Positions 33,974 through 60,500 of a DNA stretch of 64,000 nt are shown piece after piece; positions within the stretch are counted from its first letter, which is position 1, and each line of letters opens with the position of its first letter. The notes below the pieces were generated by a model. The model did not search any database. It had not been told where the DNA came from and saw only the letters and a list, made by a program, of their open reading frames with translations. Made by a program: the position numbers and the translations under genes. The DNA is taken from the IMG/VR virus record IMGVR_UViG_3300027899_000001, positions 186,001 through 250,000 of that record; one strand, written 5' to 3'.

Positions 33974-35332
33974 ATGCAAGCACACTATATCAGCGAAAAA
34001 TTTACAGAAGAATCAACAGATCCAATTAGTGATCTTGGTATAGGTATAATAAATGTGAGGAAAGAGTTTAAAACAGAAGAAGAATTTCTTCCTTATCTTT
34101 ATAAAATTTCACCAATGATAATAAATATCAAAGATCCTATAGAAATAATATACGAAGGTGATAAAGACTGGATTTTAAAGCCAAGATTCTTTAATAAAAT
34201 AGAAAAATATTGTGCAAAATATATTACAATAAATGGTGAAAGAGGTGATTTTGGATTTAATCCAGGGAATTTTAAAAGATATATCTTAAAGAAAGCAAGA
34301 AAAAAAATACATGAAGCATTTCGAGAAGAATCTGATCCTACAGAAGATTTAGGAATTGGAAAAGTTCGTTGGTTTAACAAAGTAAAAGATTTTTATATAA
34401 ATCAAGTTTTTGGATATGAAGAAGATGCGGAGCTTTTCATGGAAATCGCTGATGATGAATTAGAAGAAATGTTTCAAAATCAAATAGAGCCCGATGATGC
34501 AGCAGACGAATGTTATAGTGATATTAATTTATATAACAAATGGCGTGAAATGTCGGGTATTGATGAATCTTTAAACGAAAAATTTACAGATGAATCCGAT
34601 CCTATACGTGATATGGGAATAGGCGGAGTTTTTCGTAAAAAAGATTTTCAAACTAAAGAAGAAATATTAGATTTTCTTCTATTATATATACCTAGTATTT
34701 TTAAAACAGAAGAAATTCCAGATGATATTGTATATCCTAAAGAAGCGCATCAAGGCGCATTTAAATATAAATATTGGTACGCTTTAACAGATTATTGTAA
34801 AAAATATATTACTTTAAGAAAAAAAGAAGTAATATTTGATAATCTTCTTTGTATAGATTTATGGATAAAGTTAATAAAAATGGGATATCCTAAAGTAGAA
34901 CAAACTGAAAAAAATCATGATTATGGGCGAGAAATAATAATAGAATCGTTAAACGAAAAGTTTAAAGAACAATCAGATCCTATACATGATATGGGTATTG
35001 GGTGGGATGAAAATACTATTGAAGGGTATCTTAAACTACACGGATATTCTAAAATAAATATTGATCGTAGAAAACGAGGACATATACCCGCTATTAACGT
35101 AGAATTTTCTAAAAATGATGTGAATTTTGAATTTGAGATTGTGTTAGACGATGATTGGGCGTCTTGGAGACATCAATTAGATTGGTGGGATGACAATGAT
35201 AAAAATTATGATTGTCAAACAGAGAGATGGACATTGGGAGATAAAAACGGAGAAATAGACGACGAGAAATTTATAGTGTCTATATTAAAACGAAGATTAA
35301 ATAAATATAATAAACAACATGCGCAAACCTAA
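33974..35332 (+). CDS. Four-module SDP-GIG-tagged polyprotein (putative internal head protein precursor), 452 aa
   Basis: Tag copies at 33974-34045, 34307-34360, 34571-34624 and 34949-35002, each preceded by (I/L)xE. Confidence 0.7.
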   Translation: MQAHYISEKFTEESTDPISDLGIGIINVRKEFKTEEEFLPYLYKISPMIINIKDPIEIIYEGDKDWILKPRFFNKIEKYCAKYITINGERGDFGFNPGNFKRYILKKARKKIHEAFREESDPTEDLGIGKVRWFNKVKDFYINQVFGYEEDAELFMEIADDELEEMFQNQIEPDDAADECYSDINLYNKWREMSGIDESLNEKFTDESDPIRDMGIGGVFRKKDFQTKEEILDFLLLYIPSIFKTEEIPDDIVYPKEAHQGAFKYKYWYALTDYCKKYITLRKKEVIFDNLLCIDLWIKLIKMGYPKVEQTEKNHDYGREIIIESLNEKFKEQSDPIHDMGIGWDENTIEGYLKLHGYSKINIDRRKRGHIPAINVEFSKNDVNFEFEIVLDDDWASWRHQLDWWDDNDKNYDCQTERWTLGDKNGEIDDEKFIVSILKRRLNKYNKQHAQT

Positions 35333-37487: not shown

Positions 37488-37503
37488 TGAACCACTTATG
37501 AAT

Positions 37504-38871
37504 ATGAAATTAATTAGAGAAAATATAATAAACGAAAAATTTAGAGAAGAATCTGATCCTATTAAAGATATGGGTATAGGAATGAAACGTATATATTATT
37601 CTTTTGCACCTCAAGAAACTCAATATATTTTATTACTTCGTTGTGAAAAAATGTCTGAAAAATTAGAAGATTTTTTCATACGTCATTCTTTTTTTTGGTA
37701 TAATAAGAATAATGCATGGGAATCATCTTGGGCATATCCAAAAGATAGATGTATAAGAGAAGCTTCAAAAATATTTAAACAAATAGAAAAACTTAAAACT
37801 TACAAAGTTGTATTAGACAGAGACGAAGAAGTCTTTTTTACAGTTCCTGGCTATAATGTAAATGAAGGTGTAGCAGATAAATATACGAGACAAGATCCAC
37901 ATTTATCTCGTGTTCCTGTAGAACATGAAGATTTTGAAAGAGGATATGAGGAAAAAGAAGCTGAAGGAAAACAAAAAGAAGATAGAGATAAAATTGTATA
38001 TAAGGTTAGTAATCATGTATACGTAATGAAAAATCCCACTTCTTTAGAAAAATTCTCTCCCGATTCACGTGCAATTGTAAATAAAAATGGAGATTTATAT
38101 GTTACTACATATAATGTTATGACTCATGATGAAATGGCTCGAAGATTGGAAAAATTAGGAGAATTAAAATATCAAGATAAATGGTGGCAAAAATCTCCAA
38201 CAGAATTTATCACTATTCAAAGAATGTATAAAGAAAATAAATTTGTATTAGGAGAATCTAATGAAGCTATTATGTATTATGTAGATGCTAGTAGAAGAGC
38301 GATATATAATATGCCTGATACTGTTGAATCTGCTAAAAAAGCATTTATACCTTTTCTTGAAAAAGCGAAAAAAGTAAATCCTCAATATCAATTTATTGAT
38401 AAATCTTTAGATGATTTACTTTATTATGCTCCACATCCTGTTAAAGAAAGTTTAATTAATGAGCCTAAATCAATTACACAAGCAGAAAAACAGTTAGCAA
38501 AAGATAGAGAAATGCCCGGACTTAATAAAAGAATATTAAAAACTATTAAAGATAGAGGTGGTGATATCGTCAAAATTTATGCTGTTAATGCAGATTATGT
38601 AAGAGATAAAAAACCAGGATTAAATTTCGATGGATTCACAGATGGAGGACATCATTATGTAACAAGCTTACCCGGATATAAAAAATGGATACCGGAAAAT
38701 GAAATTTGGATAGATGATGTATTTATGATGAAACCGAATGATTTACGAGCAATACTACAACATGAATTTACAGAAAGAAATCTAATGAAGTATAAACATT
38801 GGTCTTATGATAAGGCTCACGATTATGCAAATAAAAAAGAATCAGAATACAGAGAAAGAGTTAAAAAATAA
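37504..38871 (+). CDS. SDP-GIG-tagged multi-domain protein with C-terminal HExxE...H putative metal site
   Basis: MKLIRENIINEKFREESDPIKDMGIG (start likely the second Met at 37504); internal VNE and ESLINE junction-like sites; QHEFTERNLM...YDKAHDYA. Confidence 0.65.
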   Translation: MKLIRENIINEKFREESDPIKDMGIGMKRIYYSFAPQETQYILLLRCEKMSEKLEDFFIRHSFFWYNKNNAWESSWAYPKDRCIREASKIFKQIEKLKTYKVVLDRDEEVFFTVPGYNVNEGVADKYTRQDPHLSRVPVEHEDFERGYEEKEAEGKQKEDRDKIVYKVSNHVYVMKNPTSLEKFSPDSRAIVNKNGDLYVTTYNVMTHDEMARRLEKLGELKYQDKWWQKSPTEFITIQRMYKENKFVLGESNEAIMYYVDASRRAIYNMPDTVESAKKAFIPFLEKAKKVNPQYQFIDKSLDDLLYYAPHPVKESLINEPKSITQAEKQLAKDREMPGLNKRILKTIKDRGGDIVKIYAVNADYVRDKKPGLNFDGFTDGGHHYVTSLPGYKKWIPENEIWIDDVFMMKPNDLRAILQHEFTERNLMKYKHWSYDKAHDYANKKESEYRERVKK

Positions 38872-38927: not shown

Positions 38928-39290
38928 ATGATAAAGGATATTTATATACGCTCTGTAGACGATCCCAATTTTCAATACGGTGTTTTAGAACATTCAGATG
39001 CAATAGAATCAATTATCGCAAAAATAAAAATGTTATTTGGAACTCGTCCTGGACAAGTAATGGGTGATATCGCATTTGGATTAGGTATAGAAGATTTAAT
39101 TTTTGAAACACGCGTAAATAAAATTCAATTAGAAGAAAAAATAAAATCCCAATTTGATATTTATATATCAGAAACAAAAGATTTTAAAATAACGCCTACA
39201 GTTTCATTTGGACGTGCTGATGGATATGATTATGCTATTATAGATGTTTTTGTAGATGATCAAAGATTGATAGGAATATTAGTTAAATAA
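38928..39290 (+). CDS. Baseplate wedge subunit, gp25-like, 120 aa
   Basis: IKMLFGTRPGQVMGDIAFGLGIEDLIFE matches the gp25 T..GE....P.FG..L..LLFE pattern; size and context fit. Confidence 0.75.
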   Translation: MIKDIYIRSVDDPNFQYGVLEHSDAIESIIAKIKMLFGTRPGQVMGDIAFGLGIEDLIFETRVNKIQLEEKIKSQFDIYISETKDFKITPTVSFGRADGYDYAIIDVFVDDQRLIGILVK

Positions 39291-39565
39291 TGAAAGCAAA
39301 AAGAGTATTTGAAAAATTTGAAGAAGGAACTGATCCTATTGATGATATGAACATAGGAAAGGTAGTATGTCCTTATTGTAAAGGCCATGGATATACAGAT
39401 GAACACGATCCTCTTTGTTATGATCCAAGAACAGGAGAACATGATTGTTATGGATGTCCTATACAAGTTCCATATGATTATTGCAATGGAACTGGAGAAA
39501 TATTAAAAAAGGATATTGCTAGACATCAAGCAGAAGAACAAAATTGGGACGATTTGCCCTTTTAA
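39290..39565 (+). CDS. Tagged small Zn-finger protein with SSB-like C-terminal tail, 91 aa
   Basis: MKAKRVFEKFEEGTDPIDDMNIG; CPYCKGHG, CYGCP, YCNGTG; ends WDDLPF. Confidence 0.65.
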   Translation: MKAKRVFEKFEEGTDPIDDMNIGKVVCPYCKGHGYTDEHDPLCYDPRTGEHDCYGCPIQVPYDYCNGTGEILKKDIARHQAEEQNWDDLPF

Positions 39566-40287: not shown

Positions 40288-42186
40288 ATGGAATTATTTC
40301 AGACTACTCGCGTGAGAATGTCAGAGCTTTATCAAGATGCTCTTACATTTATCACAAATACCTATGGAGACCTTGGACAATATTTCACAATGGCTTCTCC
40401 TATGGGACAATTACTTCAAGTAATTCTTCATTATGGAAGAATGATTTTATTTTATGTTGAAGATTCTGTAACTGAATTAAACATTAAAACTGCATCAAGA
40501 CCACAAAGTATAAAAGGTCTTGCAAGTTTAACTGGTCATAATCCTTCAAGAGCTATGGCAGCAAGAGGAACATTAACATTATCATATAATGGTTCTAAAC
40601 TTCCTACATATGCAAATGTAATTTCTATTCTTAATTATACTCAACTTACAAATAGTCAAAATGGCTTAACATATACTATTATTCTTCCGGGACAAGAAAC
40701 ACGATTAGATTTAACAAATATTACAAATTATATTGAAGTTAATATCGTTCAAGGAAAAATAGAATTTCAACAAGCAACTGGAACAGGAGATGCATTACAA
40801 TCATTTAATTTTCAAAATAAAAAGGGTGCATTTATTGATAATTATTACGTAAATGTTTATGTTGATGGAGTTAAATGGGCTATTGTAGATTCTATTTTAG
40901 ACATGACTATACAACAACCTGCAGTTATGGTTAAAACAGGACAAACAGGAGGAATAGACATTTTCTTTGGAAATGGTTATAACGGTGCTGCTCCAAGAAT
41001 GGGTTCAACTATATTAGTTGAACATCTTATTACTGATGGAGAAACTGGAAATATAAACAGTATGACTACTCCTACTACAAATATATGGAAATTTATAACT
41101 AAAGGATATGCACTTAATGGAGAAGAAATTGATATTAATAAATATGTTTCAATTGCAATAAAAAATGATATAATGTTTGGTGCTCAAGAAGAACCGCTTT
41201 ATCTAACAAGATTATTAGCTCCAAATATGTCAAGGAGTTTTGTTCTTGCAAACACAAACAATTATATTTATTTTCTTAGAAGATTAAATATGTTTACTGT
41301 TATAGATGCTATTCCTGGGTTTGCAACATTTGAAGATCAATATACGCTGGACAAATATAATCAAGCTCAAACAACATATGAAAAAATAAGTACAGAATAT
41401 AGAAATTTAACTGCAACATACGGAGTAACTTCAACACAAGCAACTGCTAAAAAAGTTGAATTAGATAATGCTCAACAACAATTATATACTTATCAAGCAG
41501 CACTTGAAAAACAAAAACAAGATGATAATACAGTTTACTTATTTTTAGTTCCTGATATAAATAAAAGAATACAACCCGGAGAAAATTATTATAATTGTAA
41601 TATGGCTGCATTTTCATTATCAGATGGAGAAAAATTAGCAATATTAGATTTAATAGAACAAAGTGGTCAAAGAATTTTAACAGTTGATAATGTAATATTA
41701 GATTTACAATTTCCAAGATTCACTTTAAATATGTCTCTTATATTATGGGAAGGAGCTTCTTTTGATACCGTAAGACAAAATATTATTTCAGCAACTTCTG
41801 ATTATTTTTTACAAAATACAAGAAGAGACAGAATTCCTGTTTCTGATTTAGTAAGAATTATTGAAGGATTAGATGGAGTGGATTCTGTAAATGTATGGTT
41901 TGATGCAGCAAAAGAAAATTTTGATAAAGTATATAAAAATCATTATGGAATTGATGATTATGGTGATATTATTCTTGAAAGATATGTTAAAGATGCATTT
42001 GGAAATGAAGTGTCTATAAAAGATGTATATCCTATTATTAGAGGAGGGTTTGAAAATGTATCTGGCGTATTTTACGAAGATAGTTTAACAAAAAATAAAT
42101 TATCATCATTAAATATTCAAGTTAGAGGCTATACAGCCAAAAACTTAAATTCAGAACATAATATAGCAATTGTTAATAATCTATGA
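40288..42186 (+). CDS. Baseplate wedge subunit, gp6-like, 632 aa
   Basis: ELNIKTASRPQSIKGLASLTGHNPSR, IFFGNG..G..P and Y/HLITDGETGN are gp6/baseplate-J-like motifs; follows the gp25-like gene. Confidence 0.75.
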   Translation: MELFQTTRVRMSELYQDALTFITNTYGDLGQYFTMASPMGQLLQVILHYGRMILFYVEDSVTELNIKTASRPQSIKGLASLTGHNPSRAMAARGTLTLSYNGSKLPTYANVISILNYTQLTNSQNGLTYTIILPGQETRLDLTNITNYIEVNIVQGKIEFQQATGTGDALQSFNFQNKKGAFIDNYYVNVYVDGVKWAIVDSILDMTIQQPAVMVKTGQTGGIDIFFGNGYNGAAPRMGSTILVEHLITDGETGNINSMTTPTTNIWKFITKGYALNGEEIDINKYVSIAIKNDIMFGAQEEPLYLTRLLAPNMSRSFVLANTNNYIYFLRRLNMFTVIDAIPGFATFEDQYTLDKYNQAQTTYEKISTEYRNLTATYGVTSTQATAKKVELDNAQQQLYTYQAALEKQKQDDNTVYLFLVPDINKRIQPGENYYNCNMAAFSLSDGEKLAILDLIEQSGQRILTVDNVILDLQFPRFTLNMSLILWEGASFDTVRQNIISATSDYFLQNTRRDRIPVSDLVRIIEGLDGVDSVNVWFDAAKENFDKVYKNHYGIDDYGDIILERYVKDAFGNEVSIKDVYPIIRGGFENVSGVFYEDSLTKNKLSSLNIQVRGYTAKNLNSEHNIAIVNNL

Positions 42187-42662
42187 AACTAGTTAGAGAA
42201 CATATAAACGAAAAATTTACAGAAAATACTGATTCTATTTGGGATATGGAAATAGGCTTGCCTAAGACAATGAATAATATTATAGAAAAGATATTAGACT
42301 TAGATATGCAAGAAAAATTAATTGAAAGTGGTACTACTAATAAAGGAAATATAAATCATATTATTGTAAGTAAAGGCAATCTTATAATTAGATATTATAG
42401 TAATCCATTTAAAAAAGGAGAAACACTAAAACAAAAAATACGAATAAGAAAACAATATTATATAGATCTTATAAAAAGAGCTGGTATTAGTGACATGGTA
42501 GAGAAGGGCATAGATACTCCTTTAAGATATAGAATAACTTTTAAGATAAAACAACCTTATATTAGATTTTTTCCAGAAGGATATGACTATGATGAACTAG
42601 ATTATGACTACTTTAAAAATGGCAATATAAGAACATATAAAAGTAAATATACAGGAGAATAG
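42183..42662 (+). CDS. Tagged protein (cargo family B), 159 aa
   Basis: MKLVREHINEKFTENTDSIWDMEIG; ATGA overlap with the gp6-like gene. Confidence 0.7.
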   Translation: MKLVREHINEKFTENTDSIWDMEIGLPKTMNNIIEKILDLDMQEKLIESGTTNKGNINHIIVSKGNLIIRYYSNPFKKGETLKQKIRIRKQYYIDLIKRAGISDMVEKGIDTPLRYRITFKIKQPYIRFFPEGYDYDELDYDYFKNGNIRTYKSKYTGE

Positions 42663-46548: not shown

Positions 46549-49047
46549 ATGATAATAGAAGTAATAGAAGGAAGCATATATAGATCAGCGTCTAAGACGC
46601 CTCCAATAGTATTGTTTATTCCTGCGCCAATTGCTTTAGCAGCAACAAATATTGGGCTTCATCAATTTGATGCCAATTGGGTATTTGATTCATCTATAGA
46701 AGGATATTATCTTGATGTTGCTGATAATAGTACATTTTCTTCTTTTGTATATAATAATTTAAATGTAGGAGACGTAAGTACTTATACTGTACTTGGTTTA
46801 AATTCTTCAACTAATTATTATTATAGACTTCGTGCTTATGTTGGTTTTATAAGTAGTCCTAATTCTAATATTATAGATACATCAACACTTACATTAGCTG
46901 CTCCTGTTGCAACTGCAGCTACAGATGTATCAACAAATTCATTTGTATCTAATTGGAATGATGTTTCAGAAGCTAATGGTTATTATCTTTATGTTTCTGA
47001 TAATAGTACATTTAGCTCATATGTTACAGGTTTTAATGGATTAAACGTAGCAAATGTATCAACATATTTAGTAACTGGAATTAGTGCTAATACAACTTAT
47101 TATTATCGTTTAAAAGCTTATGATAATGCTAGAACCAGTGATTATTCAAATATAATAAATACTAGTACAAATATAATGATGTACACGGCGTGTGCTACTT
47201 ATTCTCCATATTTTGTTTCAGTATCATCTTCTAGTGGATTCTTAAGTGTAGGCGCTTTAAATTCTAGTGTTGGAACAATAGGTAATTATGTAATAGAATG
47301 GAGATTAAATTCAAGTACGGGTTCTACAGTATTTGTTTCTGGATACGGAGTTGATCCTTCAATTCAATCACAACATCCTGTTGTAAATGAAGTAGTATTT
47401 GCAGGAACTCTTTATCCTATAATAAAATATACATATATAAATTCAGTAAAATATACTCTTGATTTTACTCCAGGCGCACGTTATAGTCCTGATTTTATAA
47501 ATTGCTTAAATCCAGTAGTAATTACTCCTATAGATTGCTGTACAGCTTTAGGAGTTGATCCAATATATCCTTATTATCTTTCATATAATAATGCTGCAGA
47601 TTTTGGTGTAAATAAATCTAGAAGTCTTAAATATGATATATGTCCTAGCGTAGCATACTTAGCTTGGGAATTTGATGCTTTTACAGTTCCAGAACAAATA
47701 AGATTCTATTATTGTACATCAACAAACTTTACTGGTATTTTATTAGATAATTTTATTCATGGCGCATTTCCTTTAACAACTAATTTATATCCTGCGAATT
47801 ATCCTGATGGAAGTGCAAGAACATATCAGAGACAATATAGAGGTGTTTATGGAATAAAATATATTACAGATCTTACAGATGTATCTCATAACACTGGTGA
47901 TTATGTAAGAATAGACATTACTGGTAGCGTATATGATCCAAGTAATAATAATACAAACTGGGATCTAAAAGTAAAATCGTTATATTCTATTGATCCTAGT
48001 TTTTATGATAGCAGTATTTCTAAAATTGCTTCTATAGATCCTTCATTATATTATTATGCAGATCCCGCATGTAGATATGATGTAAGTTATAATACATTAG
48101 AAATTTCACCATCATTCTCTAAAACTTCTCCAGCATCGCCGTTTATATGGAAATATATGGATGTATACACATATGTATTAAATCAAACAGGAAATAGTTT
48201 CATTAATCCTATAAATGATTCACTTAGATGGCAAAATATTACTAATTCAGCTTGGTTGTGGTATGGTGCTGGTGTAACTACAAATATGAATTTAAGTTCT
48301 GGACAAACAATAACAGCAACAAAAGATTCAAGCTATATGACATTTACATTTACAGATATAGCTGATTATAATAAATTTGCTTCTAATATCGCATCTATAA
48401 AAGCAGAACCAAATTACACTATTTGGCAAGGATTATCAAATACAAATGTACGATATTATGCATATTATCAAGTTCAATGTCCTAGTGCAGCAAGTGTAGG
48501 AGATAATTTACAAGATTATGCATTTCAGTTTCATTTATCAGCTGATATTTCATATAATGTTATTAATAAAACTATAGGTTTTCAATTTGTATCTCTTGTT
48601 AATAATATAACAGATTCTTCATGTGATAATTCATACGAACAAGCAGTATCAAGTATCAGTTCTATAAATAATATGAAAATTACGCCATGGCTTCCTATAA
48701 CAACACACGTAAGAAAAGTCGATCCTGTAACTGCTTTATGGTATAATACTACACTTACACATGAGATGACTAGAGAATCATTTACAGAATTTGATATACC
48801 AGGACCAATGACAAACAATTTAGTAGATTTAGCTGCTTTAGGATTTGTTTGGAATCCTATAGGATGGTCAAATTTCACAAATAAATGGACATTATTTAGA
48901 AACTGGGATAGAGTTAATTTTACTGGTAATGCATCTACTCATGATTATAGAATGAAACACTGGAATTTACAAAGAAAAATGTTCTTAAGAACTGATGTTA
49001 GCGCAGATACTGCATGGGAAGTTGTATATGATACGAGCATTGCATAA
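46549..49047 (+). CDS. Fibronectin type III domain virion protein, 832 aa
   Basis: Two tandem FN3 repeats (W...GYYL.V...Y.V.GL...T.YYYRL.AY...S..SN). Confidence 0.75.
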   Translation: MIIEVIEGSIYRSASKTPPIVLFIPAPIALAATNIGLHQFDANWVFDSSIEGYYLDVADNSTFSSFVYNNLNVGDVSTYTVLGLNSSTNYYYRLRAYVGFISSPNSNIIDTSTLTLAAPVATAATDVSTNSFVSNWNDVSEANGYYLYVSDNSTFSSYVTGFNGLNVANVSTYLVTGISANTTYYYRLKAYDNARTSDYSNIINTSTNIMMYTACATYSPYFVSVSSSSGFLSVGALNSSVGTIGNYVIEWRLNSSTGSTVFVSGYGVDPSIQSQHPVVNEVVFAGTLYPIIKYTYINSVKYTLDFTPGARYSPDFINCLNPVVITPIDCCTALGVDPIYPYYLSYNNAADFGVNKSRSLKYDICPSVAYLAWEFDAFTVPEQIRFYYCTSTNFTGILLDNFIHGAFPLTTNLYPANYPDGSARTYQRQYRGVYGIKYITDLTDVSHNTGDYVRIDITGSVYDPSNNNTNWDLKVKSLYSIDPSFYDSSISKIASIDPSLYYYADPACRYDVSYNTLEISPSFSKTSPASPFIWKYMDVYTYVLNQTGNSFINPINDSLRWQNITNSAWLWYGAGVTTNMNLSSGQTITATKDSSYMTFTFTDIADYNKFASNIASIKAEPNYTIWQGLSNTNVRYYAYYQVQCPSAASVGDNLQDYAFQFHLSADISYNVINKTIGFQFVSLVNNITDSSCDNSYEQAVSSISSINNMKITPWLPITTHVRKVDPVTALWYNTTLTHEMTRESFTEFDIPGPMTNNLVDLAALGFVWNPIGWSNFTNKWTLFRNWDRVNFTGNASTHDYRMKHWNLQRKMFLRTDVSADTAWEVVYDTSIA

Positions 49048-49436
49048 TGAAAACAAACAAATTAATACAAATTAATTCAGAATCCCTCGACAAATCTAGT
49101 GTATTTGTCGAGGTAAATTCTTTTAGATGGAGATCTTCATATCAATTATCTTTAGAAGAATTGTTAAAAGGAACTTCTGGAAATTATGATATATCTCAAG
49201 ATATTGATAATACTACTTTAATAATAGATGAAAATACGTTAAAGGTTAAAGTAAATCCTGTACATTTTAGTGCACCGAGTGTCTTCGCTGAGAAATTTAT
49301 TGATCAAAATATATCATATTATTCGCCGCCTAAAGATTCATCCACGTTATCGGGGATGCACATGATGACTGACAGCAACTATTTATATATATGGGTAGGA
49401 AATAGATGGAAGAGAACTCCGCTTTCAGAATGGTAA
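49047..49436 (+). CDS. Small fibre-associated structural protein, 129 aa
   Basis: C-terminal DSNYLYIWVGNRWKRTPLSEW, a motif common at phage fibre protein ends. Confidence 0.5.
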   Translation: MKTNKLIQINSESLDKSSVFVEVNSFRWRSSYQLSLEELLKGTSGNYDISQDIDNTTLIIDENTLKVKVNPVHFSAPSVFAEKFIDQNISYYSPPKDSSTLSGMHMMTDSNYLYIWVGNRWKRTPLSEW

Positions 49437-50060
49437 TTAAATATATTTATGAAGAGTTGCAGATCTGTTATCAATTATCTTTGAGCCCTGAATTAAAATT
49501 TTATTATCATTAATATATTCACGAATATATTTATCTGACATACCAGTGTCAAAGCATATAAAATCCCCCCATATTTCTTGAGGCATATATTCTAAAGACG
49601 TCAATTCTTTATTATGAGATATATTAAAATTATCTTTTATTATTCTTGGACAATTTTTTAAAGATAATAGCTTATTTTCAAAAAGCATTATAGATAATCC
49701 TATTTCTTTTGGTATACCTTCTAATGACGTAAGTTGATTTTTTCCAATATACAAATTAAAATCTACTTTTTTTGGAAATCCTTTAAAATTTTTTAATCCG
49801 CTTTCATACATTGATATTGTGCCGTGAATCTCATTAAATTTAATAAATTCAGGAAATTCTCCATTTGGTAAAGGTATGGCATGAAAATTTATACCTCTTG
49901 CATTAATAGTAAAATCATCATTTATAGTAGGCTCATATACATTTTTCTCATATTTTTCTAGCCATTCTTTAATTAACTTGCGAGATCCTATACCCATATC
50001 TCTTATAGGATCAGAATCTTCTCTAAATTTCTCATTTATGTGTTCTCTTACTATTTTCAT
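49437..50060 (-). CDS. Tagged LRR-like protein, 207 aa
   Basis: MKIVREHINEKFREDSDPIRDMGIG; repeats LKNFKGFPKKV, LTSLEGIPKEI, LLSLKNCPRII, LTSLEYMPQEI. Confidence 0.75.
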   Translation of the reverse strand: MKIVREHINEKFREDSDPIRDMGIGSRKLIKEWLEKYEKNVYEPTINDDFTINARGINFHAIPLPNGEFPEFIKFNEIHGTISMYESGLKNFKGFPKKVDFNLYIGKNQLTSLEGIPKEIGLSIMLFENKLLSLKNCPRIIKDNFNISHNKELTSLEYMPQEIWGDFICFDTGMSDKYIREYINDNKILIQGSKIIDNRSATLHKYI

Positions 50061-50377
50061 TGTATTAAATATCTTTCATTCATATCTACACGATAAACAA
50101 CATAACTATTATCATAAAAATTTACCCTTTCACCGCCATTATAACTTTCAAAACTATCTATAATACAAGAACGTTTTTTACCTCCAATAAATACACCTGT
50201 TATTTTTTTACCTTTTAAAGAATTTAAAAAATCCAACCACGAAGATAACCAAAAATTATTACCGCTTACATAATATTTAGAACGTTCTTCTTCAAAATTA
50301 ATACCTCCTATTCCCAGATCATGTATAGGATCTGATTCTTCTTTGAATAATTCATTTATATGTTCTCTTACTATCAC
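50057..50377 (-). CDS. Tagged hypothetical protein, ~106 aa
   Basis: Likely GTG start at 50377 overlapping the upstream TAG: (M)IVREHINELFKEESDPIHDLGIG. Confidence 0.7.
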   Translation of the reverse strand: MIVREHINELFKEESDPIHDLGIGGINFEEERSKYYVSGNNFWLSSWLDFLNSLKGKKITGVFIGGKKRSCIIDSFESYNGGERVNFYDNSYVVYRVDMNERYLIQ

Positions 50378-51183
50378 TAATTCCAATTTATTTTTATAGT
50401 ATATTTAAATCTACGATATCCATTTGGATAACTTTTTATAAATTCTTTAGAATGTTCTATACTTTTTATTGAATTAAAAACATTTAAATATTCAGTTTTT
50501 GGTGCGAACGCCCAACGAGATGAAAAGAGGCCAGAAGATATTTTATAACGTTGTTCTGATAAATACTCCATCATTCCAGATTCTTTTAACCAATAATCTA
50601 CATTATTTTTAAACGCAACATTATATGGAGGATATTCCACAGCAATTTGAAGATTACTTCCATCTATCTCATATTTATATAAATTTATAAAATGGTGGTC
50701 TGTCATTAAATCTGTAAACTTCTGCAGTGAATCTTCAATAGCTTTTCGTATTCCTATTCCTAAATCATATACTGGGTCAGATTCTTCTGAGAATTTTTCA
50801 TTTAGATTGCGATTCCATGTCTTATACCCCATTTTTTCTAATTTATTGAAAAGTTTTGTTATTACAAATGATGTAGTTTGGTCAAATCCTTTCATAGAAG
50901 GTATTTTAATATATTTACTAACATATTTACATAAATCTTCATATTTATCGTTATCTAAATGGTCTTGTGCTGTAAATTCTTTAAAAGACTTTGTATATAT
51001 TTTTAGAATATTATCTGGAATTTTATTAGTTTTATAAATAATAGGAATTACTTTTAATAAAAAATCTGCAGCGCCTTCTAACGTATCAAACGATCTTTCT
51101 ACATAAATACCAATTCCTAAATCACGAATAGGATCTGATTCTTCTATAAATTTCTCATTTATATGTTCTCTTACTATTTTCAT
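50377..51183 (-). CDS. Two-module tagged polyprotein, 268 aa
   Basis: N-terminal tag plus internal LNEKFSEESDPVYDLGIG at 50752-50805. Confidence 0.75.
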   Translation of the reverse strand: MKIVREHINEKFIEESDPIRDLGIGIYVERSFDTLEGAADFLLKVIPIIYKTNKIPDNILKIYTKSFKEFTAQDHLDNDKYEDLCKYVSKYIKIPSMKGFDQTTSFVITKLFNKLEKMGYKTWNRNLNEKFSEESDPVYDLGIGIRKAIEDSLQKFTDLMTDHHFINLYKYEIDGSNLQIAVEYPPYNVAFKNNVDYWLKESGMMEYLSEQRYKISSGLFSSRWAFAPKTEYLNVFNSIKSIEHSKEFIKSYPNGYRRFKYTIKINWN

Positions 51184-51524
51184 CTTTCAAATCCCATCTT
51201 TTTAAATCTCTCCATTAATAGCTCTGGCCAATAATATACTCTACATGCCTGCTCTCCTGTAGAAATTCCTTCAAACGAAATATATTCTGTTAAAAATTTT
51301 TGTATAATTAAAAAATATGTATGATTTATAGCTCCACCATATCTTAAAATATCATCAGGAATTTTTGATGTTTTTAAAAGTTGCGGAATAATAGTTATTA
51401 AATAATCTAAAAATTTGTCTACATTTACAAAATCTCGATGCGCATATAATCCAATATTCATATCTCTTATGGGATCCGATTCTTCTTTGAATGCTTCATA
51501 TATATGTTCTCTAACTAATTTCAT
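51180..51524 (-). CDS. Tagged protein (cargo family A), 114 aa
   Basis: MKLVREHIYEAFKEESDPIRDMNIG; IP....T.KIPD.I...Y...KMG motif shared with paralogs. Confidence 0.75.
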   Translation of the reverse strand: MKLVREHIYEAFKEESDPIRDMNIGLYAHRDFVNVDKFLDYLITIIPQLLKTSKIPDDILRYGGAINHTYFLIIQKFLTEYISFEGISTGEQACRVYYWPELLMERFKKMGFER

Positions 51525-51990
51525 GCCGAATGTTCTCCCATTATGATAGTAAAATATTCAATTACACTGGGTTTTATTTTAAAAATTACTTCTGAACAAT
51601 TAAATTCAGTAGGAGGTGCACTAGACGAATTTGATTTAATATCTACCTCGTCTTCCATAAAATACAAAATGCCAGCATGTTTTAAAAGATTTTTAGAATA
51701 CTCAATTTTATTTAAAGGTTTTCCATCAAGAGTTTTAAATAAATTAGAATATGTAAGAACTCTTAATTGTTCGTTGGCTAAATCTATAATTAAACCTCTT
51801 ATATTTTTTTATCACTTATATGCCAATTATTATTCATAGTAGATAGATATTCAAATTTGAAAGTGGTATCATATTTTATTATATCTTCAGGAGATTTTTC
51901 TATATTTTTTACAATGCCAATGCCTAAATCATGAACAGGATCTGATTCTTCTCTGAATTTCTCGTTAATATGTTCTCGTACTATTTTCAT
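51521..51990 (-). pseudogene. Tagged gene (cargo family B) interrupted by a frameshift at an A7 tract
   Basis: The 63-aa ORF stops just after A7 (T7 at 51804-51810). Adding one A gives a 156-aa ORF ending in an ATGA overlap at 51521 and resembling 42183..42662. Confidence 0.7.
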
Positions 51991-52144
51991 ATAGTTTATA
52001 TATTTAGATTTTTATAAACCCTAATGATAAAGAAAATTTAACAAAATTTTAACACCAAAATTAAAAACTATGTTTCTATTAATGAATATATAATTATGAA
52101 TTTGATCTGACGACAAATTTAAATTAAACTAAAATAACTATCTT

Positions 52145-52158: not shown

Positions 52159-52596
52159 ATGACAAACTTAGTAAAATTTTTAGACCACAACGAAATGGAA
52201 CCTTGGGACGTACTATTTCGTGATTTTTTTAATAGAGATTCTTTCTTTATGCCTGCATTAAATTCTACAATCAAATATCCAGTAGATATTCATGAAGATG
52301 ATAAATCTTTAAACATTGAAATTGCGTGTGCAGGAATAGATAAAAAAGATATTCAAATTGAAGAACAAGATGGAATTCTTCGTGTATCTTATGAAAAACA
52401 AGAAGAAGAAAATAATGAAGGAAAACATTACATTCAGAGATCAATTGCGAAAAGATCTTTTAATCATGGATGGAAAATTTCTGATAAATTTGATCCTAAA
52501 CAAATTGAAGCTTCTATGGATAAAGGAATTTTAAAAATTTCAATTCCACGATCAGAAGAAAAACAAATAATCAAAAACACAATTAAAATTAAGTAA
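52159..52596 (+). CDS. Small heat-shock protein (Hsp20/alpha-crystallin family), 145 aa
   Basis: YPVDIHED, AGIDKKDI, RSF and ASMDKGILKISIP motifs; C-terminal IKIK. Confidence 0.92.
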   Translation: MTNLVKFLDHNEMEPWDVLFRDFFNRDSFFMPALNSTIKYPVDIHEDDKSLNIEIACAGIDKKDIQIEEQDGILRVSYEKQEEENNEGKHYIQRSIAKRSFNHGWKISDKFDPKQIEASMDKGILKISIPRSEEKQIIKNTIKIK

Positions 52597-52705: not shown

Positions 52706-53554
52706 ATGAATCATCAAAAAATTTATGAAGCTATAATAACTAAAGCAAAACTAGAAAATAGAAAAAAACTTATAAAAAATAATTTAAATTATATATATTA
52801 TGAAAATCATCATATAATTCCTCGATGCTTAGACGGAACAAATGATGAATATAATTTAGTTTTATTAACTGCTAAAGAACACTATATATGTCATAAATTA
52901 TTAACTTATATTTATAAAGGAAACAGAAAAATTGCGTGTGCATTTTATCGAATGGCCTTTAATAAAAAAGAAAAATACAAAATTTCATCAAGAGACTATG
53001 CATATGCAAGAGAACTAATTAGTAATACTCCTGTATCAGAAGAAACAAGAAAAAAAATAAGTAAAAAAAGCAAAGAACATAAAACATTTTTAGGAAAAAA
53101 ACATACAGAAGAATCTAAGAAAAAAATAGGATTAGCACAAAAAAATAAAATTGTTTCAGCGAAAACTAAACAAAAACAAAGAGAAGCTAATTTAGGAGAA
53201 AAAAATCCGATGTATAAAAAATGCAGTCATTTTAAAGGAACCCATTTATCTGAAGAAAAAAAGAACCACTTAAGGAATTTATATTTAGGAAAAACCCTTG
53301 AAGAATTATATGGAAAAGAACGTGCAAAAGAAATAAAACAAAAAAATAGTAAAAATAATAAAGGAAAAAATTTAGGAAAAATAAAATCAAAACAAGAGCG
53401 AAAAATTATATCAGATTCTGTTAAAGAATATTATAAGTCTTCTAAAGCTAAAATAAAAACTAGTGAAACTACAAAATTAGCAATGCAAAGACCAGAGGTT
53501 AAAGAGAAACAAAAATTAGCATGGATAAAACGAAAAGAAAACAAACAATTATAA
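52706..53554 (+). mobile_element. Freestanding HNH homing endonuclease (T4 Mob-like) with NUMOD3-type repeats
   Basis: YYENHHIIPRCLDGTNDEYNLVLLTAKEHYICHKLL; Lys-rich HTEESKKKI repeats. Confidence 0.85.
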
Positions 53555-56500
53555 AGATGGTAAAGGCCACTGACCTGGAAAACCATATGTTTTCGCACCA
53601 GTTGGCACAAAATCTTTATATAAAAATTTTAACCAAGCAATATTAGTAGGCCTAAGTAATTGATAACTTGGAAAAGGATCGTTTGTAGTAATCAATGACA
53701 TCGATGCTATTAGAGTATTTTTATATGCTTTATAATCAAGAACAGTGCCTTTCAATTTAGTTTCATAGTTAGAAGATAAAAGATCTGCGTTTTTTAGTTT
53801 AAATTTATCTGTTATATTATTTAATACATTATAATTTATATTATCATCCAAATCACCTGCAATATTTATTACTGGTTTAGGATTTTTTGCAGTTAATCCA
53901 AAATTTGCTGTGTCTGGGCTTATCGCTATAGGTAATGCAGCAATACTTTTATTAACATTATCAGCCATAGAATTTAAAGTATTCATTTGATTGTTAATAG
54001 ATTTTTCTGTTGAATCTAAAGAACTTGTAATACCTTTTACTGATTTGCCTCCTGAATATGCATCTCGTAAAATAGCATATTCAGTTTGATATTTCCATAA
54101 TTTTCCACTTTCGGTTGCTATTGCTTCATAATATATTGCAACGCCTTCAACCCAATTTCCATACGCTTTCGCATATTCTAAAGACGTTGTTGTATATTTT
54201 GTAGGTTTATTAGCTTTAAGATTTTTAAGTTCACTTTTTAATCTTTTAACAGTTTCTTTAGATTTATCTACATTTTCTTTAGCTTTATCCATAAGGGGTT
54301 TTATGCTAATTTTTTTCAAATTTGCTATCTGATCCGATATTTCTTTTTTGAGTGCTTGTATTTCATTTTTTAATGCAATCGTAGGATCTCCAAACGGCGT
54401 TACAAAATTTGTATTAAGATTTACAAATAAACTCCAAGGAAATAAATAAATTCCGCATATAGTTAATCCCAATAATATAACTCCATAAGACGTACTTATG
54501 GGTTTTATTGGAACATACACAACTGGAAAAGGAATGGGGGTTGGAAATATCCAGCCTGTTGACCAACCCATTGCAGGATTTGTTACACTTGCTAATGTAG
54601 CATATGAACAATATTTTAACCAATATTGAATATCACCATATCCATATTTTGATTTAGGATTCATATAAGGATCAATTTCTTCTGATTCACAGGTTCTTGG
54701 TTCTGCAATTGAATATAATCTTGCTTGTTTTCCGTTATATTCTGTAATAGAATATGTAGTAAACATGGAAATACTATCAATAAGTTTTTGCAATTCTTCT
54801 ATTTCTACAGGCAATTTTAAATATTCTTTCCATAGAGCTTCAACAAACGTAAAAAGATAATTTCCTTCTTTAACAGTTTCTGTTCGTTGTGTAGTTTCTT
54901 TTTTAATTAAATTATATTTTTTAACTATCGTATCAGCATTTAAATATAATTCGAATAAAAACATAACTCTATTAACAGCAATTAATTTATCATTTCCTTC
55001 CAATTTTCTATTATCATTTGCCAATCCCATTAACCAAGATTTAAGATCAGATAATTTTTTATTTTGTGAATAAACAGCCATCGCTTTTTTAAACCAATCA
55101 CCCAATGATAATCCTTTTTCAATTTCTTTTATTCCTTCATTTATTTTTTGTGCAAGTTTATCTTTATTGTATCCATCAAGAACATATCTTTTTCTTATAA
55201 ATTCATTTATTTTATCTCGTATTTCTATTTCTAATTTAGTTGGATTTTCTATACCATTAAATACTGGACCTAAATTTAATGAATAATATTCAAATAAATC
55301 ATATTCATTTGATTTAGCTTTTGTTAACTTAGCAGCATTTTGTGCCATATCTCTTAAGAGATTTAAATGTTTATAAAATTTTTCGTCTTCTGTTTCTATT
55401 TGTTTTTTTATTTCATTTAATGTTTCATTTTTTGCATGTTTTTCAACATTATCTTGTCCAGCTATTTGTTTAATTTTATTATCGTGTTCTTCATTAATTA
55501 AATTATATGTTAATAATAATCCTGCATATTGTTTGTTAATTCCTGTATATTGATCATGAGTAGATGCATCATCTACAATAGAAATTGACAACATTATAGG
55601 ATATAGTGTTTTAATATAATAATATTTTAAAAATACTTTTGCACTGTTTAAAGTTGCATATTTTTCATTCAAAGAATTAATTAATGATGTTAAGTAATCT
55701 TCAGGAGGCTCCGATATATCTCTAAGAACTATTTTATTGGTAGTTATTTCATCTATGTATCCTGGAATAGGAGAAAAAATAGATTGTGTTCCTAAATTAG
55801 CAATTTTAGTCTTTTGATCTACAAAAGAATCTTTAGGAAGAAATGAAATTAATGCATCAGTTTTTCTATTATTTTGTATAATAGCCATAGTAACTAAATC
55901 CTCATTAACTGTAGCTTCAACTGTAGTTTCTTCGTTTTGAATAATTTCACATGATGTATTTTTTAATCTTTCTTCCAATGGTCTGTGTGGCACGATGACA
56001 TCATCGATGACGACTGGACAATTAAAAGTCGATGTAAAAGGAATCTTATTAATAGAAACATTAAATGGCTCAAAATCACTCTGACATATAGCATCTGTAG
56101 CTATCACTTTTAAAGTTTGAGAAGAGTGTTTATGTAATTTTTTTCTATTAATTAAATATAATGAAGTTATTACTGTAATTGCTATTAAAATATCATCAAT
56201 ATTTTTAAAAGAATTCATTAAATCTTCAAATTGTTTTTTAGTTGAAGATAATCTTTTATCTGTTGAATCTTTTATTTCTTCGTATTCACTTTTTATTAAT
56301 GCATATGTATTACGAATTAATTTTTGAATATATTTGGTTCTATATTTTGAGGGATGAACAGTTTTAGTTAATAAATCTTTAGTCATATCAACATTATGTT
56401 GAAGTAAATATTTATATGTTTGTAGTTTTTCTTGAAATTGATTTGTTTGTAGTTTCAATGCTTCTTTCTCAGCATTTATTCCTTCTTTAATATTTATGTC

Positions 56501-58749: not shown

Positions 58750-59451
58750 TTAATGTATTAGTTTATATTTTTGTAATAATTTTATTATTCGTATTCTTCT
58801 ATTTTTTACTTTCCAATAAAGAAGATTACGAGATAAATTAGAATTCACTGTTGCTCCAAGTTTTATAATAAATTCAGCAGTTTTAATTTTTCCATTATAA
58901 CAAGCTGTTGCTAAAGAATTACTTAATACTTCAGGAGTTAATTGTATTCCATTGTCTATTAATAATTGAAGTATATGAACATGATCAGTTTTAGCTGTCA
59001 TATAAAATGCTCTTGAATTTTCTAAGTTTACGTCTGCTCCATGATCTATCATAAATTTAACCATTAAGGAATTACCTTTAGTACAAGCTTGCACAAGAAA
59101 TTTTCCATTAGACATATTTAAATCAACGCCTTCTTCAACTAATATTTTAAGTATTTCTAAATTATTATATACAATTGTGTATCTTAAATAATCACTATCT
59201 TGATAATTACTACGTGTAATAGATTTTTTTGCTTGTCTATATAAATAAGAAACAAATTCAGGTTTATTAGATGATATGCATGCTAATAATTTAGAATGAG
59301 CAGAAGAACTTGCATTTGGATAACTACGGCCGCTTTTTTCAAACCAAGTATTAATAGCGTGTTCCATTCCAATTCCCATATCTTGTATAGGATCGGATTC
59401 TTCTGAAAATTTTTCATTTATCCATTTTCTATATGCTGAAAATTTTGTCAT
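58750..59451 (-). CDS. Tagged ankyrin-repeat protein, 233 aa
   Basis: MTKFSAYRKWINEKFSEESDPIQDMGIG; ANK motifs (LKILVEEGVDLN, VKFMIDHGADVN, AEFIIKLGATVN). Confidence 0.8.
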   Translation of the reverse strand: MTKFSAYRKWINEKFSEESDPIQDMGIGMEHAINTWFEKSGRSYPNASSSAHSKLLACISSNKPEFVSYLYRQAKKSITRSNYQDSDYLRYTIVYNNLEILKILVEEGVDLNMSNGKFLVQACTKGNSLMVKFMIDHGADVNLENSRAFYMTAKTDHVHILQLLIDNGIQLTPEVLSNSLATACYNGKIKTAEFIIKLGATVNSNLSRNLLYWKVKNRRIRIIKLLQKYKLIH

Positions 59452-59453
59452 CG

Positions 59454-60500
59454 TTAAAATAATTCATATTTTTTTAATAAGTCATAAACTCTTATTCTTC
59501 TACGTTGTTGAGACCATTTTTTCAATAACATTTTTAAAAGACTATTTACTTTTGCGCCTTTTTCTACTAAAAATTCTATCATTTTCAAATCTCCTCTGTC
59601 ACAAGCACTAGTTAATGCAGCATCTAAAATTTCTTTATCTATATCTATATTATCTAACAGATATTGTATAACATTTTTATGTCCAGCATTAACTGCTACT
59701 AAAAATAAATCTCTATTATATCCAATGCCAGTATTTGCGCCATTGTTAATTAAATATTCTAACATAGGTATATTGTCATATACCGTTGTATTTCTAAGTA
59801 TACAAGGATTTGCATTTACATTTGCTCCTGCTTCAACTAACATTTTAACTATTTCAAAGTTATTATAATTTACTGCTGTTTCTAAATAATCACCATAATT
59901 ATAATTTAAATTAGGAACTTTTGGTATAAGATATTTAACGAATTCTATTTTATTATCTACAATACTTTGTCTTAATCTTGAGCGAATATCATTAAAATAT
60001 AAAGGATATAATTTATCTCTAAAATAATCATCCATTATTCTTTCAATTCCAATACCCATATCATGAACTGGATCTGATTCTTCTTTAAATTTTTCATTTA
60101 CTGACGTATTTGGCGAAATGTTTGTATGATATTTACTATTTAATAATTTAATAACTTGTTCAACCATATCTATTACTTTAATATTTTCCCATTCATGACT
60201 ATATGCGTTTTCAGTATGTTCGAATGCATTTTTAAATGCTATATTATCATTTGCGTTAATTGTCAGTTCTTTTAAAGTAAAATAAAGAAGCATAACACAT
60301 ATAGTTTTTTCAGCATCTGTTTTCTTTTTATCTCGAAAATTTTTATTATAGAACGTTGTTGTACTTATAGGCCCCATTCTTTTTATTTCCTCTTTCCATA
60401 AATTTTGTAAATAAGGACGGCCTATACCCAAATCTTTTATTGGATCAGATTGATCAGAAAACTTTTCATTTAACCATTTTCTATATGCGTAGAATTTCAT
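59454..60500 (-). CDS. Two-module tagged polyprotein, second module ankyrin repeats, 348 aa
   Basis: N-terminal tag; internal VNEKFKEESDPVHDMGIG at 60048-60101; VKMLVEAGANVN, IEFLVEKGAKVN. Confidence 0.8.
   Translation of the reverse strand: MKFYAYRKWLNEKFSDQSDPIKDLGIGRPYLQNLWKEEIKRMGPISTTTFYNKNFRDKKKTDAEKTICVMLLYFTLKELTINANDNIAFKNAFEHTENAYSHEWENIKVIDMVEQVIKLLNSKYHTNISPNTSVNEKFKEESDPVHDMGIGIERIMDDYFRDKLYPLYFNDIRSRLRQSIVDNKIEFVKYLIPKVPNLNYNYGDYLETAVNYNNFEIVKMLVEAGANVNANPCILRNTTVYDNIPMLEYLINNGANTGIGYNRDLFLVAVNAGHKNVIQYLLDNIDIDKEILDAALTSACDRGDLKMIEFLVEKGAKVNSLLKMLLKKWSQQRRRIRVYDLLKKYELF

Follow-up and report, generated by a model that had tools for sequence, protein, structure and literature searches.

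Several systems are known in which a short peptide marks small proteins for a capsid or in which a conserved module carries exchangeable cargo. In phage T4, the internal proteins IPI, IPII, IPIII and Alt carry a capsid-targeting sequence (CTS), the 10-residue MKTYQEFIAE, and the prohead protease gp21 cuts after L/I-x-E (PMC9026906). The inner-body and ejection proteins of the giant phages phiKZ, 201phi2-1 and SPN3US are processed by a gp21-like protease at S/A-x-E, a diverged homologue that needs few determinants beyond Glu. In encapsulins, cargo targeting peptides (native NTGGDLGIRK, consensus DGSLGIGSLKG) are usually C-terminal and bind a dedicated shell protein, with two hydrophobic residues separated by glycine anchoring the cargo in a pocket of an HK97-fold shell. 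Finally, polymorphic toxin systems join a conserved N-terminal part to interchangeable C-terminal modules, arranged in tandem arrays and diversified by recombination (PMC3482391).

In this context, we analyzed an array of tagged genes in a stretch of 64,000 nucleotides, referred to here as the window. It is 100% identical to part of IMGVR_UViG_3300027899_000001, a complete Lak-related huge phage genome (405,016 bp, terminal repeats, CheckV 100%). An earlier note had described five head-to-tail minus-strand genes with six tags, coupled by ATGA or TAG/GTG overlaps and meeting the baseplate operon. This observation is confirmed. The features of the array and of the tagged genes elsewhere in the window are as follows; F1, F2 and F4 denote cargo families, and G001, L007 and L008 are labels of sequences compared here.

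51521..51990, minus strand: array gene 1, with the tag at 51916-51990 followed by a 63-aa frame ending at 51799; the gene is broken by a frameshift at the A7 run 51804-51810, and the downstream frame 51521-51805 encodes a module homologous to the third module of G001 136298-137590.
51994..52006, minus strand: promoter-like AAATATATAAAC, a variant of the genome-wide upstream motif GAATATATAAAATAAA, lying only 5 nt before the ATG against the usual 15-18 nt.
51180..51524, minus strand: array gene 2, 114 aa, tag (51450-51524) plus helical cargo family F2, with ATGA overlaps at both ends.
50377..51183, minus strand: array gene 3, 268 aa, two modules, tag (51109-51183) plus F2 cargo, then an internal tag (50752-50805) plus a unique cargo.
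50057..50386, minus strand: array gene 4, 109 aa from TTG at 50386 or 106 aa from GTG at 50377 overlapping the upstream TAG, tag plus cargo family F4.
49437..50060, minus strand: array gene 5, 207 aa, tag (49986-50060) plus leucine-rich-repeat (LRR) cargo of family F1, ending back to back with the plus-strand tail operon.
49047..49436, plus strand: conserved 129-aa last gene of the baseplate/tail-fibre operon, the left border of the variable slot in all relatives.
52159..52596, plus strand: Hsp20 gene, the right border of the slot in G001, L007 and L008.
33974..35332, plus strand: tagged 452-aa gene with three tags (F2-F2-unique) inside the neck/baseplate operon.
37498..38871, plus strand: tagged 457-aa gene directly after the head-tail adaptor-like gene.
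39290..39565, plus strand: tagged 91-aa gene with a Cys-rich cargo.
42183..42662, plus strand: 159-aa gene with a degenerate tag (TDSIWDMEIG), overlapping the end of the gp6-like baseplate wedge gene by 4 nt.
58750..60500, minus strand: two tagged ankyrin-repeat genes (233 aa; 348 aa with two tags) directly upstream of the gp5-like baseplate hub gene (57969-58748).

The ATGA overlaps lie at 51180-51183 and 50057-50060, and a TAG/GTG one-base overlap lies at 50375-50379. As the note had stated, the first 36 nt of the genes starting at 51183 and 50060 differ at one base while their cargoes are unrelated, a helical F2 domain and an LRR, respectively. The promoter-like sequence TAAATATATAAAC at 51994-52006 belongs to the upstream motif GAATATATAAAATAAA, which is 20-fold enriched before about 70 genes. 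Nevertheless, the description needs three corrections. The first gene is not a 63-aa gene followed by a 274-nt gap but one gene split by the frameshift, as the downstream frame is homologous to another tagged module (E 2e-12) and ends in an ATGA overlap with the next gene. The 114-aa gene and the first module of the 268-aa gene are paralogues. Last, the 35/36-nt identity is not above expectation: at identical residues, tag pairs share the codon in 64.8% of cases against 61.3% expected from codon usage, and 3% of the 3,403 tag pairs share an exact run of 20 nt or more.

The note saw one array of what is a genome-wide family. The array is one of about ten, and the genome holds 61 tagged ORFs with 83 tags, 58 N-terminal and 25 internal, plus one further variant. 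The tag reads MK[IL]V[RK]EHINE-KFxEESDPIxD[LM]GIG. A tag profile hits 1,652 representative protein clusters in metagenomes at E<=1e-3, and none in Pfam or cultured phages; proteins carry up to 10 tags with a median spacing of 126 aa. DNA and protein searches of 50,697 phage records found no match to the locus or to either of the two tag types described below. Literature searches for the motif strings returned nothing relevant, and the huge-phage papers we checked do not mention such a tag. An AF2 model of the 268-aa protein shows the tag as coil plus one helical turn in front of a confident cargo domain. Cargo modules have a median size of about 110 aa, fall into 45 clusters and are basic, with a median pI of 8.8 against 6.85 for other proteins. 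They include LRR, ankyrin and unknown folds. Foldseek searches of the 268-aa model against PDB and BFVD gave no credible match, and ESM Atlas leads for the 114-aa protein were weak. Clustering of 649 metagenomic modules collapsed by single linkage and was discarded.

The comparison with T4 is the closest. The phage encodes T4-type head genes, with Peptidase_S77 (PF03420, E 2.4e-15) in a 781-aa gp21-type protease-scaffold protein and a Gp23 capsid protein (PF07068, E 1.2e-38). In 82 of 83 tags [ILV]-x-E is found in register, at residues 6-10 in N-terminal tags, and 56 of these are [ILV]NE. This is also the most over-represented tripeptide in the protease-scaffold protein, where it occurs 10 times against 0.78 expected, the strongest enrichment in the proteome (P about 1e-8). 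All 120 homologues of that protein carry 6-13 copies, and N is 4-fold enriched at P2. The capsid protein contains HALNE|AAMGG, resembling T4 gp23 FLTE|AEIGG. The leader MKIVREHINE matches the T4 CTS at five of 10 positions (M1, K2, E6, I8, E10), too short a stretch to show homology, and internal and type-B tags lack the leader. As in T4, the cargo is small, basic, diverse and dispensable-looking, and the loci are hypervariable between relatives. In contrast to T4, there are about 62 genes instead of about 4, the tag is 25 residues long with most of its conservation after the putative cut, tags also occur internally so that the products would be polyproteins, and the cargo includes LRR and ankyrin domains, considered here as binders.

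The other systems share fewer traits. Like phiKZ, 201phi2-1 and SPN3US, which carry many processed head-internal proteins, this is a giant phage, but the inferred protease motif is [ILV]NE, the lineage is Lak/Mahaphage-related, and we found no common conserved tag or repeated tag-cargo unit described for them. The tag ends in a nearly invariant D[LM]GIG, a hydrophobic-Gly-hydrophobic core like that of encapsulin peptides in a region that is flexible in the model, and the phage capsid protein also has the HK97 fold; yet the similarity covers 4-5 residues and may be chance. The likeness to polymorphic toxins proposed in the note fails, although recombination between a conserved region and downstream cassettes is seen in sister-lineage phages. 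The array genes overlap by 1-4 nt with no ORFs, and hence no immunity genes, between them. No toxin domains were detected, as Pfam finds only LRR-like and ankyrin domains or nothing, every cassette has its own start and tag without promoterless orphan cassettes, and the system is phage-encoded and appears tied to virion assembly.

Our favored explanation, which we consider somewhat more likely than not, is that the tag is a protein-level address and processing signal, a greatly expanded version of the T4 CTS and internal-protein system. Each unit is a flexible, acidic tag of about 25 residues followed by a small, basic cargo domain of about 90-140 aa, and units occur as single genes, as translationally coupled tandem genes or fused into multi-tag ORFs. 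In this view, the first half of the tag ends in [ILV]-N-E, the motif we infer the gp21-type prohead protease cuts, and the second half, KFxEESDPIxD[LM]GIG, would dock the unit to a phage-encoded partner in the prohead, either the scaffold core or the inner capsid face. Tagged proteins would be loaded into the prohead, cut at every tag into single small domains, kept in the head with the DNA and injected as early host-manipulating or anti-defence binders. The family, the tag anatomy, peptide-level selection, lineage-specific tag types, the T4-type head genes, the motif concordance and tag-to-tag indels in relatives rest on the analysis itself, whereas cleavage, packaging, injection and cargo function are inferred from sequence without any proteomic or cleavage evidence.

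Further support comes from the position of tagged genes inside late structural operons, some overlapping structural genes, and from the use of a single tag type in each lineage. Type A occurs 83, 2 and 8 times in its three sources with no type B, and type B (FERGxDPKxxMxIG) occurs 1-16 times per locus with no type A, which fits co-evolution with one shared receptor. Other findings speak against this reading. Unlike in the T4 CTS, most of the conserved tag lies C-terminal to the proposed cut. In type-B relatives [ILV]NE is replaced by INFE, and many type-B tags start directly with MNFERG. Sixty-two genes and about 84 modules would be a very large load of internal proteins, and tagged genes cluster with baseplate and neck genes as much as with head genes. 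Moreover, no such tag was found in 958 kb around other gp21-type protease homologues (80 loci, including two homologues at 54-62% identity), in one NCBI 376-kb relative near its protease, or by a tag-profile search of Prevotella phage Lak-A2, the last of which does not show absence; a T4-type head does not therefore require this tag. A complex prediction of the tag peptide with the 781-aa protein returned no answer (score 0.00), which is no evidence either way.

If the explanation holds, about one gene in eight of this 405-kb phage and more than 1,600 protein clusters in metagenomes, most of them currently ‘hypothetical’, would gain a common explanation. It would show that huge phages scale the T4 internal-protein idea up to dozens of injected binder domains organised as protease-cut polyproteins, and would provide a natural, portable tag for loading foreign proteins into large capsids. 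A bolder and rather unlikely version, though of great interest if true, is that the tag is a bipartite capsid-loading signal in which a prohead-protease site is followed by an encapsulin-like D[LM]GIG peptide that docks each module to the inner face of the HK97-fold capsid protein. Huge phages would then use the encapsulin solution to pack, separate and inject an arsenal of about 80 small LRR, ankyrin and novel binder domains, renewed by tag-to-tag cassette exchange as a heritable, combinatorial anti-defence library. Such a possible link would bear on how capsid-derived compartments acquired cargo loading.

Among the alternatives, the one that survives best, though only as a tentative possibility, is that the tag is a shared docking or processing motif for a partner outside the virion, such as a cytoplasmic protease that matures polyproteins, a phage or host hub protein, a chaperone, or a degradation or timing system, so that the cargo would act inside the infected cell without being packaged. 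The motif sits as a flexible linker before every module, lineage-specific tag types fit any single co-evolving partner including host-encoded ones, many arrays lie far from structural genes, and other phages with T4-type heads lack the tag. This is countered by the in-register [ILV]NE, which equals the motif most enriched in the prohead scaffold and found at the likely capsid-protein maturation site, by the small and basic cargo resembling known internal proteins, and by the tagged genes embedded in late structural operons. Less likely, tagged proteins could be loaded on or in the contractile tail (hub, spike or tube), like type VI secretion effectors with N-terminal loading markers. Two tagged ankyrin genes lie directly upstream of the gp5/VgrG-like hub gene, tagged genes follow the gp6-like wedge gene in all relatives, and the array abuts the tail-fibre operon. 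However, no PAAR, adaptor or other known loading domain was detected, the tube lumen of myoviruses is occupied by the tape-measure protein, and the protease-motif concordance points to the prohead, where gp21-type proteases act. That the conserved sequence is primarily a DNA-level recombination or cassette-capture site, with peptide conservation secondary, is very improbable: although crossovers map inside the tag in relatives and a tandem duplication starts at the tag core, synonymous positions are essentially random, mean nt identity is 66% with typical exact runs of 5-15 nt, the peptide is conserved across the 1,652 diverged clusters, and no integrase or site-specific recombinase is linked to the arrays. 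An RNA-level or translational role for the conserved 5' ends is rejected, since synonymous sites are random and tags also occur internally.

The note had inferred that tag-coding DNA doubles as a recombination anchor for gaining, losing and fusing cargo cassettes, as in the hypervariable T4 internal-protein locus, and this interpretation is partly supported. Tag DNA is not homogenised, and the tag is kept by protein-level selection, with recombination as a by-product. Because every unit starts with the same peptide, the tag-coding DNA would, in our model, also serve as the junction where cassettes are duplicated, deleted, swapped and fused, making such slots hypervariable. No such event could be seen in the window's own array: one set of assembled contigs, uninformative about rare variants, reproduces the locus exactly, with all apparent joints being cross-matches of paralogous tags, and a metagenome scan gave no relative above 61% identity. 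The comparison across relatives that the note had called for shows that the slot between the tail-operon end and Hsp20/p1150 holds different tagged genes in every relative examined (five genes, one gene, one 5-tag fusion, two to five others), and cargo families recur in different module positions and with different partners. Direct support comes from a sister lineage, in which near-identical phages differ by exactly one tag-bounded cassette. The states are tag-Y, tag-LRR-tag-Y and tag-Ank-tag-Y, and the crossover lies inside the tag, at its D-P codons, a clear natural case of a peptide signal that also acts as a cassette-exchange junction. In L008, the string KFTDILKPLS was first considered a third tag type, but it is more likely the start of one ankyrin cargo family carrying only the MKLVREHINE leader.

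The region 49437-51990 holds five minus-strand ORFs of 63, 114, 268, 109 and 207 aa. All of them begin with MK[IL]VREHI[NY]E.F.E[ED]SDP[IV].D[LM].IG, and the 268-aa protein carries a second, internal copy, which makes six tags. Neighbouring genes overlap by ATGA at 51180-51183 and 50057-50060, while at 50375-50379 a TAG stop shares one base with a GTG start, the start called by JGI. The array ends back to back with the plus-strand tail operon at 49436/49437. The arrangement described in the earlier note is thus real, and, as it stated, the first 36 nt of the genes starting at 51183 and 50060 differ at one base.

The 63-aa ORF and the 274-nt 'gap' that follows it are, however, one gene. Downstream of an A7 run (51804-51810), the frame shifted by -1 stays open to 51521. 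It is homologous to the last module of another tagged protein of the same phage (E 2e-12) and to metagenomic relatives, and ends in an ATGA overlap with the 114-aa gene. The array was therefore once a fully coupled chain of five genes, whose first member (51521-51990) is now either a pseudogene or depends on transcriptional or ribosomal slippage at the A run. The opposite-strand ORF annotated by JGI at 51543-51839 is probably spurious.

The window lies within JGI contig Ga0031658_1000001 (133,176 bp, 28% G+C), which is 100% identical to positions 176029-309204 of IMGVR_UViG_3300027899_000001, a 405,016-bp genome with terminal repeats and a CheckV completeness of 100%, hereafter G001 (window coordinate + 186000). 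G001 is a tailed phage with a gp6-like wedge, a gp5-like hub, gp32, an Hsp20, a gp21-type prohead protease (Peptidase_S77) at the N-terminus of a 781-aa protein, and a gp23-type major capsid protein. The capsid protein is 48% identical to those of the Lak megaphages of Prevotella, which belong to the 'Mahaphage' clade predicted to infect Bacteroidetes (PMC7162821). Translation with table 11 gives 94% coding density, so no other genetic code is needed. Tagged genes outside the array and other features of the window are as follows.

1110-32556, minus strand: a run of giant ORFs of 1578, 1341, 5002 and 1751 aa, containing internally repeated DNA at about 74% identity that is shared with other parts of the 405-kb genome; many long spurious ORFs lie on the opposite strand at 27651-32009.
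32698-33915, plus strand: a 405-aa protein with three S1 RNA-binding domains (PF00575, E 1e-22), a ribosomal-protein-S1-like gene of the kind reported for huge phages.
33974-35332, 37498-38871, 39290-39565 and 42183-42662: tagged genes inside the neck/baseplate operon.
39582-40286 and 52706-53554, both plus strand: homing-endonuclease genes inside the baseplate operon and beside Hsp20, respectively.
57001-57558, minus strand: a 185-aa protein of the 2H-phosphoesterase / 2',5' RNA ligase family (PF13563, phrog_755) with a faint Acb1 hit, a candidate anti-CBASS cyclic-nucleotide phosphodiesterase lying next to the baseplate hub genes.
58750-60500: tagged genes next to the hub.

The array noticed in the earlier note is one part of a genome-wide family. 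G001 has 61 ORFs with 83 tag copies, 58 within the first 30 residues and 25 internal, and a 62nd ORF carries a DAI variant, which together amount to about one in eight of roughly 485 ORFs. Many tagged genes lie in tandem arrays, at 77.6-80.5, 135.8-138.5, 152.6-155.0, 169.6-171.9 and 235.4-238.0 kb among others. The conserved core is [ILV]-[N/Y/F]-E-K-F-x-E-E-S-D-P-I-x-D-[LM]-G-I-G, in which E, F, D and the last G are invariant. N-terminal copies add a short leader, either MK[IL]V[RK]EH or M[KR]A[QKHW][YFR], whereas internal copies have no conserved leader. A profile built from the 82 aligned copies finds 1,652 representative clusters at E<=1e-3 among 1.84 billion proteins, and 642 at E<=1e-10. 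These proteins carry up to ten tags with a median spacing of 126 aa, and the first tag is usually at the N-terminus. Pfam and PHROGs have no model for the tag, searches of cultured or deposited phages, including Lak-A2, gave no match, and a literature search found no paper describing it.

Selection acts on the peptide and not on the DNA. Over all 3,403 tag pairs, positions with the same residue use the same codon in 64.8% of cases, where genome codon usage alone predicts 61.3%. Mean nucleotide identity is 66%, with a maximum of 89%, and exact runs are mostly 5-15 nt. The match of 35 of 36 nt is thus what an A+T-rich codon bias gives for twelve identical residues, and there is no sign of gene conversion. 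In an AF2 model of the 268-aa protein both tags are predicted as coil with one helical turn at DPIx, leading into cargo, and the first cargo domain is a confident helical domain with pLDDT above 90.

Splitting the G001 proteins at the tags yields 85 modules in 45 similarity clusters. The large families are LRR (15 members, including the 207-aa gene, for which ESM Atlas gave pTM 0.81 with LRR neighbours), a helical family F2 (11 members, including the 114-aa gene and module 1 of the 268-aa gene), ankyrin (10 members) and F4 (3 members, including the 109-aa gene), while 36 modules are singletons. Modules are small, typically 90-140 aa with a median near 110 aa, and basic: their median pI is 8.8 and 73% exceed pI 8, against a median of 6.85 and 41% for the other proteins. 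The same family appears alone, first or last, and with different partners. For example, F2-F4 is fused in G001 169560-170207, but F2(-x) and F4 are neighbouring genes in this array, and LRR follows ankyrin, unknown modules or nothing. Some tagged proteins (G001 167659-169563, outside the window, and the protein P0080) start with a nucleotidyltransferase-like domain (GSFKPMHIGH), preceded by a different leader (MKFSSYISWLNE) and followed by tags, so enzymes can also be cargo.

Several lines of evidence lead us to read the tag as a head-loading and processing signal. T4 internal proteins carry a 10-residue capsid-targeting sequence (CTS), MKTYQEFIAE, which the prohead protease gp21 removes by cutting after L/I-x-E, and the scaffold protein gp22 is cut at many such sites. 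In G001, 82 of 83 tags have [ILV]-x-E in the same register, and 56 of these are [ILV]NE. This is the most over-represented motif of that kind in the proteome, and the enrichment is in the protease-scaffold protein, with 10 sites against 0.78 expected (P about 1e-8). All 120 homologues of that protein keep 6-13 such sites, and N is 4-fold enriched at the middle position. The protein (G001 306658-309003, outside the window; L025:6658-9003, minus strand, in our numbering of loci) fuses the prohead protease to a scaffold-like region of about 560 aa with Trp-containing repeats. As a whole it is 55-82% identical across more than 4,000 metagenomic proteins, so this phage clade is very abundant. The capsid protein has HALNE followed by AAMGG, close to the T4 gp23 maturation site FLTE|AEIGG. 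The conserved 1150-aa and 718-aa proteins flanking the tagged genes (53549-57001 and 60497-62653, both minus strand) are themselves enriched in [ILV]NE (6 against 1.15 expected and 5 against 0.72), and may be further substrates of the prohead protease, meaning ejection or internal proteins.

The tag therefore carries what looks like this phage's own prohead-protease site, and cutting at every tag would release single modules of about 10-16 kDa. The basic charge of the cargo, its small size and its diversity match T4 internal proteins, as does the position of several tagged genes inside late structural operons, some overlapping structural genes. The AAATATATAAAC upstream of the array, at 51994-52006, is a variant of the motif GAATATATAAAATAAA, which lies 15-18 nt before about 70 start codons genome-wide, a 20-fold enrichment, and in the window also upstream of 33974 and 52706. 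It is probably a phage promoter class with very short leaders. The genes it precedes include large structural genes and 14 tagged genes or arrays, but also homing endonuclease genes, among them the two in the window, so that this is weak support.

Phages with a syntenic baseplate region (wedge protein 65-75% identical) fall into groups that use one tag type only. Type A, the type found here, occurs 83, 2 and 8 times in G001 and the related loci L007 and L031, with no type B. Type B, ...INFERGxDPKxxMxIG, occurs 1-16 times per locus in nine loci, with no type A. Both types share D-P, four residues, then [LM]-x-I-G. Dozens of paralogues changing together is what one expects of a signal read by a single co-evolving partner. 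A hint to its identity comes from the D[LM]GIG end of the tag, which equals the core of encapsulin targeting peptides (native NTGGDLGIRK, consensus DGSLGIGSLKG). This suggests the inner capsid face as the partner and would explain why conservation extends beyond the putative cut. The resemblance is a lead rather than a result, and a complex prediction of the tag against the protease-scaffold protein returned no answer.

On this evidence, the system works most like the T4 CTS and internal-protein system. It shows every defining feature that could be tested from sequence, whereas cleavage, packaging and injection are inferred, and we regard the packaging and processing model as only somewhat more likely than not. 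It differs from the T4 system in scale (about 62 genes), in having internal tags (polyproteins), in a longer tag conserved mainly after the putative cut, and in its LRR and ankyrin cargo. The main rival, a shared partner outside the virion, is possible but clearly less likely. Loading onto the tail is improbable, and a primarily DNA-level role can be all but dismissed. The array is also not a polymorphic-toxin system, the analogy drawn in the earlier note, as no toxins and no immunity genes were found.

The earlier note further proposed that tag-coding DNA doubles as a recombination anchor for cargo cassettes, an interpretation that is partly supported. The slot between the 129-aa tail-operon gene and Hsp20/p1150 is conserved in position but not in content: the window has five genes, L007 has one (F2), L031 has one 668-aa ORF with five tags (ankyrin, F2 and three others), L008 has two genes, L136 five, and the type-B phages two to five. 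For the window's own array no exchange of cassettes at tags could be seen, as the one sequencing run compared consisted of contigs identical to the window and no relative closer than 61% exists in the collections. Fine-scale evidence comes instead from the type-B lineage, at the gene just before the homologue of the 129-aa gene, which takes the following forms.

L043, L033, L034 and L133: tag-Y (110 aa).
L037 and L137 (370 aa) and L038 (410 aa): tag-LRR-tag-Y.
L036: tag-ankyrin-tag-Y.

In a three-way alignment, L043 is identical to tag 1 of L037 up to the D-P codons, and from there follows tag 2 of L037 at about 95% identity. L036 shows the same junction. Both breakpoints of the cassette gain, loss or swap therefore lie inside the tag. 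A neighbouring gene loses its third module from the start of tag 3 onward, and within G001 a tandem duplication in the 754-aa protein runs from tag core to tag core. So tags do act as exchange junctions, although with only about 66% DNA identity this is probably microhomology plus selection for in-frame products, and not efficient homologous recombination. The LRR cassette of the type-B relatives (L037:4061-5173 and L038:4066-5298) is itself a perfect 20-residue tandem repeat (NTQITSLPDNL...), whose copy number differs between these near-identical phages and accounts for the two protein lengths of 370 and 410 aa.
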